A stretch of 64,000 nt of DNA from the NCBI GenBank assembly GCA_039096225.1, contig JBBPEB010000006.1:682001-746000 (forward strand), read 5' to 3'. The stretch is from Blastocystis sp. Blastoise (Eukaryota; Protista; Bigyra: Opalinata). A program made the position numbers and the translations under genes. Numbering within the stretch: the first letter of the stretch is position 1; each line of letters begins with the position of its first letter. Of this stretch, positions 7,250 to 10,200 are shown piece by piece. The notes under the pieces were generated by a model. It did not search any database, was not told the origin of the DNA, and saw nothing but the letters and a program-made list of their open reading frames with translations.

Positions 7250-10200
7250 TTAGGTGTTGTTGTTATAATTTCTGATTCATTATCATTATTTAAATTAATA
7301 TGAGGAATATTTGTTATCAAACTTAAAGGAGGAAGAATAGGACTTAAATCAGGAATAGTTAAATAACTATTCATGATGGAATTAATAGATCTATTATTTC
7401 TTTGTATTATTGTTTCATTATTATTAGTATTAGTGTTATTTATAGAATGATTCGTATTATCATTAATGATTACAGAATTATTATTGTTAGATATATTTAC
7501 ATCAGTTGGAATAGTACTAACAACAGGTAAAGAGTGTGAAGAAGTATTAATAGAATCATTATTATTATTAGAAACTGAAATATTATTTTCTGTAGGTTGT
7601 ATAATAGTAGTTGATATAGGAATAGATGAATTATTATTATTTATTGGACTTTGAACAATAGATATGTTATTGATTGATTGATTTATTGGATTCATTTGAT
7701 TGAATAAGTTTGAACCATTATTTAACATAGAATTATTATTATTTATTTGTGAATAACTATTATCTATATCAATATCAATATTGTTATTTGAAATATTGTT
7801 TTGAATGTTTTGTAAAGGAATATTATTTTGTATATTAAAAGTCGAAAACAAAGCTAAAGGTTTTAAATTAAAACCAAATGATTTAGATAAATCATTATTA
7901 TTTATTTTATCCTTATTGGAACCTATATATATTAATAGTTAGATATTAATTATATTATGTTTAAGTTTAGAATAAAGTTTAGTTGTGTAGTATATAAATT
8001 AACTTTCATTGTTATAGTTGTTGAAGTAATTATTAATTAATATAAAGTATAACCTTTATTAATATAATATAATACATAGATATAGTATGATAATATATAT
8101 ATTAATATAAAGTATAACATTTATTAATATAATATAAGTCATAAGTATAGTATGATATATATTAATTAATATAAAGTATAACCTTCATCAATATAATATG
8201 ATACATAAGTATAGTATGATATATTAATTAATATAAAGTATAACCTTTATTAATATAATAATACATACATATAGTATAGTATGATATATATTAATTAATA
8301 TAAAATATAACCTTTATTAATATAATAATACATAGAATATAATATGATATATATTAATTAATATAAAGTATAACCTTTATCAATATAATATAATACATAA
8401 GTATAGTATGATATATATTAATTAATATAAAGTATATAATTCTTATTAATATAATAAGTCATAAGTATAGTATGATATATATTTATTAATATAAAGTATA
8501 ACCTTTATTAATATAATAATACATAGTTGTACTATGATATATATTTATTAATATAAAGTATATAACTCTTATTAATATAATATAATACATAGTTATACTA
8601 TGATATATTTATTAATATAAAGTATATAACCTTTATTAATATAATAATACATAGTTATACTATGATATATTTATTAATATAAAGTATATAACCTTTATTA
8701 ATATAATAATACATACATATAGTATGATATATTTATTAATATAAAGTAAAAACTTTATTAATTAACAATTATCTTCAATACTATAATGTAATGAAAGATA
8801 ATATTATAATTAATGAAAACTAATATTAAATAAGTATAGGTAATTAATATTGTATAATTTATTAAACAATCTATATGATTCAACCTCATAGAGGACATCT
8901 ATAGCTATTGTGCTTTGTTACAACATTCTATAAACATATAGCTAACTACCAGTTAATATCATATACAATGTGAGTAAGTGAAGAATCTTAACACTTAGAT
9001 ATCTCATCATTGATAGTATTACATCGGTTAGACTATATAGAGTTAGAAGCGAACAATAGTCAGCAATAGTATGAGTCATATAGGTAATCAATAGTTGTAT
9101 TAATTAAATTAAATACAAATATTAAAATACTCAACACTATTTAATATTAAGTAATTCAAAAATTATCTTAATATCCGACACCTTCCCGTTAATCGACACG
9201 ATTAAAGTAAAATTAAAATAAAAAAAAATAACAAAACAAAAATGAAAAAAGAAAGGATTCTATTAAATATTTAAATACTAAGTAGCTAAAGCTAAGCTTA
9301 GTAAATTAATATATAAATAGATAATAAAAAGAAAGCAGATAACAGAAAGCTATTATCTGTGAAAATAAAATAATAAAACAAAAGAAAAAGAAACTAAAAT
9401 AATAAATAATACTTACCCACAACTTTATTTGAACCTATATAAGTATAGAATATAATATAAGTATATATATACCTTGAATAATTGAAGAATTGTTGACAGC
9501 ATCAATGACTGAAGAATTATTAACACCATCACCTATATATATACAATAGTATAAGTATAAATAAATAAATAAAAAAAAATTATATATATATACCTTTATA
9601 TATATTAGTAGTAATCATATCAAGACCAACATTAGAGTGACAGGATCCCAAATTAAAAGACACACCTATATAGAAATATATAATAAGTAAAACAATATAT
9701 ATATATATATATATATACCTTCTGAAGAAGAAATAGAAGAATGACCATGTACTAACTGAGTTGAAGGACCTATATAAAAACAAATAAGAAAGAATTAAAA
9801 GAATAATAAAATATATATATATATGATATATCTATTTACCTTCAACCTCATAAGGATGATCACAATCAGACACAGTACCATTAGTAGAAGAACCTATACA
9901 TAAAATAAGTTAAATAAAAGAAAATAGATGATATATACCTTTATTATTATTACCATTAGCACCCATCATTGCATTAGAACAACCTATAGATAAATATTGA
10001 CAGGAAATTAAATAAAAATTAAAAGAATAGCAACGTACCTTCAAGACCACTAACACATCTTGCATCAACATCAGCAACAACAGCATCCACAACAACAGAA
10101 GAACCTATAGATAAATATAAATAAAAAAATAAAAATAAATGATTAGCATCATACCTTGAAGACCATGAGTAGAGTTAACATCACCATCAACAGCTCCAGT

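Follow-up and report, generated by a model that had tools for sequence, protein, structure and literature searches.

In the genome of the tortoise-gut protist Blastocystis sp. Blastoise, an autonomous Helitron of 12.1 kb carries within its RepHel gene an unusually long intron, about 80% of which consists of two imperfect DNA palindromes: a 283-bp rod, and a hairpin of ~230 bp with a minisatellite in its loop. The best explanation, to which we give about an even chance of being correct, is that these palindromes and the minisatellite are passengers in an intron of an active Helitron, tolerated there because they loop themselves out. The element lies in a window of 64 kb (C14:682001-746000, C-numbers denoting contigs); coordinates preceded by w are positions in this window, and W denotes the window copy of the Helitron. 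The sense strand of RepHel is the minus strand of the window, the plus strand being antisense to it. The genome comprises 33.3 Mb in 34 contigs and the window has about 22% G+C. Tortoise-derived Blastocystis isolates have genomes of 26–33 Mb with a G+C content of 21–23%, and their introns are longer and more variable, almost all introns of the human subtypes being 30 bp (PMC10690189).

An original prediction, made without database searches, had described the intron as composed almost wholly of self-complementary domains, and this is correct; four short hairpins occupy the part that the two palindromes leave free. It had proposed chiefly that the Helitron carries a large, strand-specific structured RNA antisense to RepHel, an idea that fared badly, and as an alternative an effect of the fold on splicing, which we regard as the most plausible functional reading.

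The long intron and its folding

The intron spans w7923–9416 on the minus strand, is 1,494 nt long and lies in phase 1. Its 5' splice site is GTAAGT (w9416–9411) and its 3' splice site AG (w7924–7923), the stretch ending in TATAG. Directly upstream, the sequence and the public gene model P0001 place a micro-exon of 18 nt (w9417–9434, minus strand) that encodes ..SNKVV and ends in ..GTGG; the next exon is in frame and open from w7922, and the reading frame is continuous across the junction. P0001, a protein of 2,079 aa from a sibling copy, reads ..SNKVV followed by GSNKDK.. at exactly the same junction, and the public annotation pipeline was tuned to keep junctions supported by RNA-seq (PMC10690189). 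Two diverged copies of the Helitron, on C4 and C24, keep the splice sites, the length of the micro-exon and the phase. Judging from sequence and the public gene model, we therefore regard w7923–9416 as a genuine spliceosomal intron, as had been claimed; GT..AG boundaries, frame and the P0001 junction all agree, and the length is one base under that originally given. Neighbouring introns in the micro-exon region measure roughly 40–70 nt as read from the sequence. The motif CTAAC (w7942–7938, minus strand), 16 nt upstream of the 3' splice site, is the likely branch point.

The rod (w8843–9125) was identified both by folding and by palindrome alignment, with 109 Watson-Crick pairs among 123 aligned palindromic positions. 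Its minimum free energy (MFE) is −65.3 kcal/mol on the plus strand and −62.1 kcal/mol on the minus strand, with z-scores against shuffled sequences of −5.3 and −3.7 respectively, and it is present in the whole-intron centroid folds of both strands; a rod at this place is thus confirmed. When MFE was regressed against GC for 452 windows of 283 nt across the 64 kb, however, the rod fell only within about the top 2–3% (z −2.1), a weaker standing than had been claimed for it. Rod-like palindromes are unusual yet not unique in this AT-rich genome. A BLAST self-palindrome scan is not usable as a base rate, since indels split the rod and it was not recovered as one match.

The second palindrome had been described as two helices clamping a tandem array. 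The inner clamp, formed by about w7998–8052 with w8745–8812, was recovered on both strands when the whole intron was folded (MFE and centroid), and also in a fold with the array deleted; with the array removed it has an energy of −33.4 (+) and −34.9 (−) kcal/mol, with z-scores of −5.8 and −7.2 against shuffles of the arms. The array itself is a minisatellite at w8031–8762, in which Tandem Repeats Finder (TRF) delimits 11.5 copies of a unit of 62–64 bp, in agreement with the earlier description. The outer clamp fared less well. Pairing between its left arm (w7922–7958) and right arm (w8798–8840) is detectable in array-removed folding, as had been stated, at z-scores of only −2.3 (+) and −3.2 (−); the helix is weaker than had been stated, and the full-length folds put a local hairpin at w7925–7955 in its place. 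It does form in the C4-type MFE structure on both strands. The 3' splice site does lie within this outermost helix, as had been noted, and its left arm also contains the likely branch point. Between the outer and inner clamps is an unpaired bulge (w7959–7997), in which the lineages of W and C4 differ by ~50%.

The 291-nt remainder of the intron contains four short hairpins, three of which had been placed correctly and one of which, at w9144–9174, had been missed; the stems of the latter, identified by folding and by comparison with C4/C24, are identical in those copies. Of the other three, each read from the sequence, TTAATCG/CGATTAA (w9189–9205) is lost in C4/C24, TACTAAG..CTTAGTA (w9276–9303) has two mismatches there, and CAGATAA..TTATCTG (w9335–9359) is a perfect 10-bp stem there, the sole difference in W being a G-U pair on the sense strand. 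The remainder as a whole has z-scores of −4.05 (+) and −3.68 (−). A GTGTCG motif also occurs twice, ~25 nt apart, in w9170–9200; W and C4/C24 share both occurrences, although the sequence around them has diverged.

The preferred strand of these structures is not constant. It had been claimed that non-Watson-Crick pairs are mostly G-U on the plus strand only, as would befit a strand-specific structure. Mismatches of the G-T and A-C kinds number 0 against 1 in the rod, and only in the clamp is there an excess, of 6 against 1. The strand favoured by z-score swaps between domains, being plus in the rod, minus in the clamp domain (−4.4 on plus, −7.1 on minus) and neither in the remainder, and the whole-intron MFE favours the sense strand (−313.6 kcal/mol on minus against −285.7 on plus). 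No strand is consistently favoured, and the features are DNA palindromes, each of which consequently folds on itself on either strand.

Comparisons with known and covarying structure were likewise negative. Rfam yielded no match for the intron (cmscan, E up to 1), and ARAGORN found no tRNA-like gene in it. Covariation was compared between two lineages only, W and C4, and gave no signal. Pairs predicted in W and broken in C4 numbered 47 of 242 on the plus strand and 40 of 266 on the minus strand; pairs kept in C4 by a one-sided change numbered 13 (+) and 18 (−), and those kept by a two-sided change 2 (+) and 5 (−). The reciprocal count from C4's own folds was symmetric (39/238 and 41/257 broken). 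Between these lineages there is thus essentially no covariation, a handful of double changes standing against 47 and 40 broken pairs. With no consistent strand preference, no Rfam match and no covariation, with decay of the rod and remainder in C4/C24, and with absence from the sister and non-autonomous families described below, a large structured RNA antisense to RepHel is not borne out.

Copies and relatives of the element

The rod and the clamp each occur in about 20 copies in the genome (20–21 matches), all within this Helitron family, and a genome search found no free copies of the rod or hairpin outside it. Eighteen copies are 97–100% identical across the intron, while a diverged lineage is made up of the two on C4 and C24, each with an intact open reading frame (ORF) of 1,559 aa. 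The flanks of these two differ, which implies separate transpositions. Their intron is 852 nt long and has the same layout without the array, the single unit forming a hairpin loop of ~55 nt. As the young sibling copies have 10.7–11.8 units, the array is evidently a later expansion, now stable within that range. The hairpin (clamp) domain of C4 is still structured (z −4.4 and −4.8). Its rod, with 94 Watson-Crick pairs and energies of −50.0 and −56.7 kcal/mol, is no better than shuffles (z −1.46/−0.77), and neither is its remainder (z −0.74). Since the C4 and C24 copies are intact and have transposed even though their rod and remainder are unstructured beyond shuffles, the module of palindromes and array is dispensable. 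The analysis thus shows that the rod and array can be done without, and that the array is young.

Relatives without the module lead to the same view. A sister Helitron family (on C16 and C15; public model P0013), whose RepHel has 66–72% DNA identity, has a phase-1 intron in the same place, just upstream of an Asn-rich exon of its own; this intron is 297 nt long (z +1.18) and contains no palindrome or array. A non-autonomous family (on C29, and as an insert in the C8 copy) matches w14034–9313 at ~83% before it diverges; its TC...CTAG ends are proper, it has inserted several times, and a rod-like palindrome was not found in it. The 5' 635 bp of the Helitron occurs more than 40 times in the genome. 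Because relatives that lack the module have multiplied, the module is not needed in cis for transposition, and any role must concern the expression of RepHel.

Copies of the Helitron are mosaic. W and C4/C24 are 97–100% identical from the 3' end to about w7955 and 55–86% identical thereafter, and the non-autonomous family shares only w14034–9313; both breakpoints (~w7955 and ~w9313) fall within the 12% of the element that the intron occupies. The array, with its left edge, is in addition a sink for nested elements, affecting copies on C6, C7, C8, C15, C23, C28 and C31. The C8 copy holds a 6.3-kb non-autonomous Helitron (TC...CTAG, inserted between A and T) and the C6 copy a 2.8-kb Helitron relative. 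In the C7 and C28 copies an element with the ends CAAGCGT..ACGCTTG is present in opposite orientations, with a TTAATA target duplication in C7 and following the same TTAATA motif in C28. The C15 copy has a further break, and the C23 copy and two C31 copies have a 2.7-kb Helitron at w7931. By a rough count, the density of nested insertions at the array is ~10 times that of the rest of the element.

The Helitron and its setting

The whole element occupies w1910–14033 on the minus strand, as delimited by its end sequences, by the limits of homology among copies and by a head-to-tail junction on C10. Its 5' end begins with TC preceded by A at w14033, and its 3' end comprises a GC-rich palindrome or hairpin and CTAG followed by T at w1910. 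It thus has the 5' TC, the 3' CTRR, the subterminal 3' hairpin and the insertion between A and T without target duplication of an autonomous Helitron, and the same ends are found on nested relatives and in a tandem junction. At that junction (C10:16500-16560) two copies lie head to tail with only TA between them (..CCCTAG-TA-TCATTAC..), an arrangement that reads as either a rolling-circle-style tandem or a precise end-adjacent insertion.

The main RepHel ORF (w2146–6825, minus strand) encodes 1,559 aa and matches Helitron_like_N (2.2e-56), PIF1 (2.1e-64) and Pif1_2B in Pfam, which supplies the RepHel expected of an autonomous element; its sequence is that of the NCBI protein WA158_002607 from Blastocystis sp. 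Blastoise, at 100% identity. In protein searches the close hits were only the two Helitron families of this genome, the next, in animals and plants, being at ~38% identity. The exon that directly follows the long intron (w7000–7922, minus strand) is rich in Asn and Ser and, in the ORF list, open from the 3' splice site, with residues 219 onward of P0001 corresponding to w7926–6586. Within this exon, at w7300–7870, ~30 shared sites (5%) set the window copy apart from every other copy, C4/C24 among them, against only ~1.5% in the adjoining intron; the tract looks like a conversion from an unseen lineage. The N-terminus of RepHel (w9417–10560) is encoded by tandemly repeated units of a micro-exon plus intron, ~105–125 bp long and variable in number among copies. 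Within this region TRF reports a period of 122 at w9976–10288, and P0001 uses these exons. The Helitron is inserted directly after a separate repeat (w1–1893), which contains a 619-aa ORF without a Pfam match and recurs at ~8.6-kb spacing on C14, C13, C10 and C29.

Explanations for the palindromes

If the palindromes are passengers, two old inverted duplications would have produced the 283-bp and the ~230-bp palindrome, and the minisatellite would have arisen through slippage at the hairpin loop and inner stem of the latter, only in the younger and more prolific lineage. The extra DNA would persist in the intron as the element's tolerant spot, and we propose that it is tolerated there because the palindromes loop themselves out. 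Closure of the rod and inner clamp in the pre-mRNA (minus strand) is predicted to loop out ~1,100 nt; with both closed, the path in silico from the 5' splice site to CTAAC is ~372 nt (291+2+28+51) against 1,477 nt, and the shortened path of ~370 nt would be close to the sister family's 297-nt intron. The origins by inverted duplication and by slippage, and the tolerance through self-folding, are what we infer in this account. In kind, such features are already known, both as palindromes and tandem arrays in rolling-circle transposons and as long introns that fold upon themselves. Derivatives of DINE-1 and Helentrons contain central tandem repeats, and Helitrons also carry satellites. As in those arrays, a minisatellite and inverted repeats lie in the non-coding interior of a Rep/helicase element and the length of the array varies by copy. 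The present array differs in lying within the RepHel intron of the autonomous element itself, enclosed by a hairpin stem and steady at ~11 units, and whereas DINE-1-like elements have and expand the array in their non-autonomous copies, here the non-autonomous derivatives are without it.

Several observations sit less comfortably with mere passengers. The hairpins at w9144–9174 and w9335–9359 are nearly invariant within a region of 73–78% identity, the other two being lost or damaged. The palindrome of W (109 Watson-Crick pairs, −65 kcal/mol) is cleaner than that of C4 (94 pairs, −50 kcal/mol), and in the register of W 21 pairs are broken in C4 but intact in W, and 1 the other way round (binomial p 1e-5). 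Divergence at positions paired in W is about half that at unpaired positions (14% against 26–28%, p ~1e-5), and 17 young copies vary at 6 of the 283 sites of the rod, compared with 20 of the 291 in the remainder of the intron (p 0.008). As evidence of maintenance, the test of polarity was nevertheless set aside: it depends on register, partly reversing in that of C4 (16 against 8), the counts from MFE structures are symmetric, and only the totals are robust (109 against 94 pairs, and 4–15 kcal/mol per domain). Lower divergence at paired positions was rejected as proof of selection, because W-paired sites are ascertained as unmutated and the histories of the domains differ; low diversity of the rod is weak evidence, the copies being mosaic and the comparison region rich in homopolymers. 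A maintaining force is hinted at, not decisively, the suggestive signal standing at ~0.01–0.02 after allowing for the choice of the better-looking lineage.

A more far-reaching reading, which we consider rather unlikely, is that the successful lineage actively preserves its hairpins, whether through selection or through hairpin-templated correction during the single-stranded phase of the element. A Blastocystis spliceosome tuned to very short introns would then remove the 1.5 kb only if the extra RNA is looped out, and the outer helix would set the dose of RepHel. Intron-bridging ('zipper') stems are known from long introns of yeast, and complementary repeats from those of vertebrates. The predicted helices resemble these in cutting the path from 5' splice site to branch point, in silico, from 1,477 to ~370 nt. 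Intron-bridging stems, however, pair sequences near the ends of the intron and are conserved, whereas these are self-contained palindromes without covariation, of which the clamp domain stays structured in C4 and the rod does not. A separate proposal, which we consider improbable, is a splicing throttle, in which selection acts on the conserved short hairpins and on the outer helix that holds the branch point and 3' splice site, and these set the amount of RepHel mRNA through intron retention or slow splicing. The outer clamp, with both CTAAC and AG in it, is part of the C4-type MFE structure of either strand, significant structure in both lineages is confined to the clamp domain (−4.4 to −4.8 in C4, −4.4/−7.1 in W), and of the two conserved hairpins that at w9335–9359 has as its single change a sense-strand G-U pair. 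Yet in W the outer clamp is weak (z −2.3/−3.2) and gives way to a local hairpin in full-length folds, its left arm lies within the block of 97–100% identity, such that its conservation is uninformative, there are no compensatory changes, and the sister family manages without the helix.

Equally improbable, in our estimation, is a role or side effect at the level of DNA in rolling-circle transposition, whereby hairpins on the single-stranded intermediate would prime or pause synthesis, or would be polished by hairpin-templated correction and act as hotspots of recombination and insertion. Single-strand origins of rolling-circle plasmids are needed in cis and depend on orientation. The present features recall them in size and form, as imperfect palindromes of 200–300 nt in a non-coding part of a rolling-circle replicon, which speaks for such a role, as do the placing of both mosaic breakpoints in the intron (~w7955 between W and C4, ~w9313 between the autonomous and non-autonomous family 3), at least six independent transposable element insertions or breaks in or beside the array, and the cleaner palindrome of the prolific lineage. 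They differ from such origins in that relatives without the module transpose and the palindrome has no consistent strand preference. An origin required in cis was accordingly rejected, given module-less relatives with proper ends and many insertions and a sister family without the module. That the non-autonomous elements transpose well without it, and that the sister family lacks it, also counts against the wider proposal; moreover, W and C4 share ancestral internal loops, which excludes wholesale conversion of one arm by the other, and the count of hotspots is without a proper denominator. The alternative that the rod and the hairpin-plus-array are each a small palindromic non-autonomous transposon, of the miniature inverted-repeat or foldback type, that landed in an ancestral intron of ~300 nt seems to us highly improbable. 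Foldback elements carry tandem repeats between or within their inverted arms, the two compact palindromes abut at a distance of 2 nt, and the sister family's homologous intron measures 297 nt; against this, all 20–21 matches lie inside Helitron copies, and the array is a late expansion rather than part of an incoming element. This origin was rejected for want of independent copies at unrelated sites and of a clear target-site duplication at the edges of the rod.

There is also little likelihood that the intron is a source of hairpin RNA, with the rod (an imperfect duplex of ~125 bp) and clamp, in pre-mRNA or excised intron, cut into small RNAs that silence the Helitron family, as host defence or self-limitation. 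Long, near-perfect hairpins do lie within an RNA polymerase II transcript, and a gene with a Piwi domain is present (C26:481274-482069). In Dictyostelium discoideum, intronic hairpins of the microRNA kind and thug-S give Dicer-dependent small RNAs (PMC6161686), and the likeness extends to long, AT-rich hairpins in the AT-rich genome of a protist. Unlike thug-S, however, the rod is not found in free copies, and a six-frame search of the genome detected no RNase III domain (PF00636, PF14622), though going exon by exon it could miss one. The family is prolific all the same, with ~20 copies at 97–100% identity and intact ORFs, and the C4 lineage lets its rod decay. As for a large structured RNA of the plus strand, antisense to RepHel and serving either as a regulator or as a RepHel-binding scaffold, we hold it to be very improbable indeed: the 6 G-T to 1 A-C mismatches of the clamp and the slightly greater stability and lower z-score of the rod on the plus strand speak for it, but the mismatches of the rod (0 against 1) do not, the inner clamp and whole intron favour minus, the counts of kept and broken pairs lean to minus if anything (23/40 against 15/47), Rfam has no match, and the structure is lost in C4/C24.

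The passenger account thus remains the best explanation. Read plainly in that way, the intron is a case of palindromes and a minisatellite accumulating at the one tolerant spot of an active transposon, accompanied by mosaic evolution of its copies, an outcome that is useful for the annotation of Blastocystis genomes and unsurprising. If the hairpins are instead maintained and splicing depends on them, the Helitron would be a natural test bed for the limits of intron length and for structure-dependent splicing in Blastocystis; and were they needed for the removal of a 1.5-kb intron, this could reveal a structural rule for intron tolerance, and a means for a transposon to tune its own transposase.

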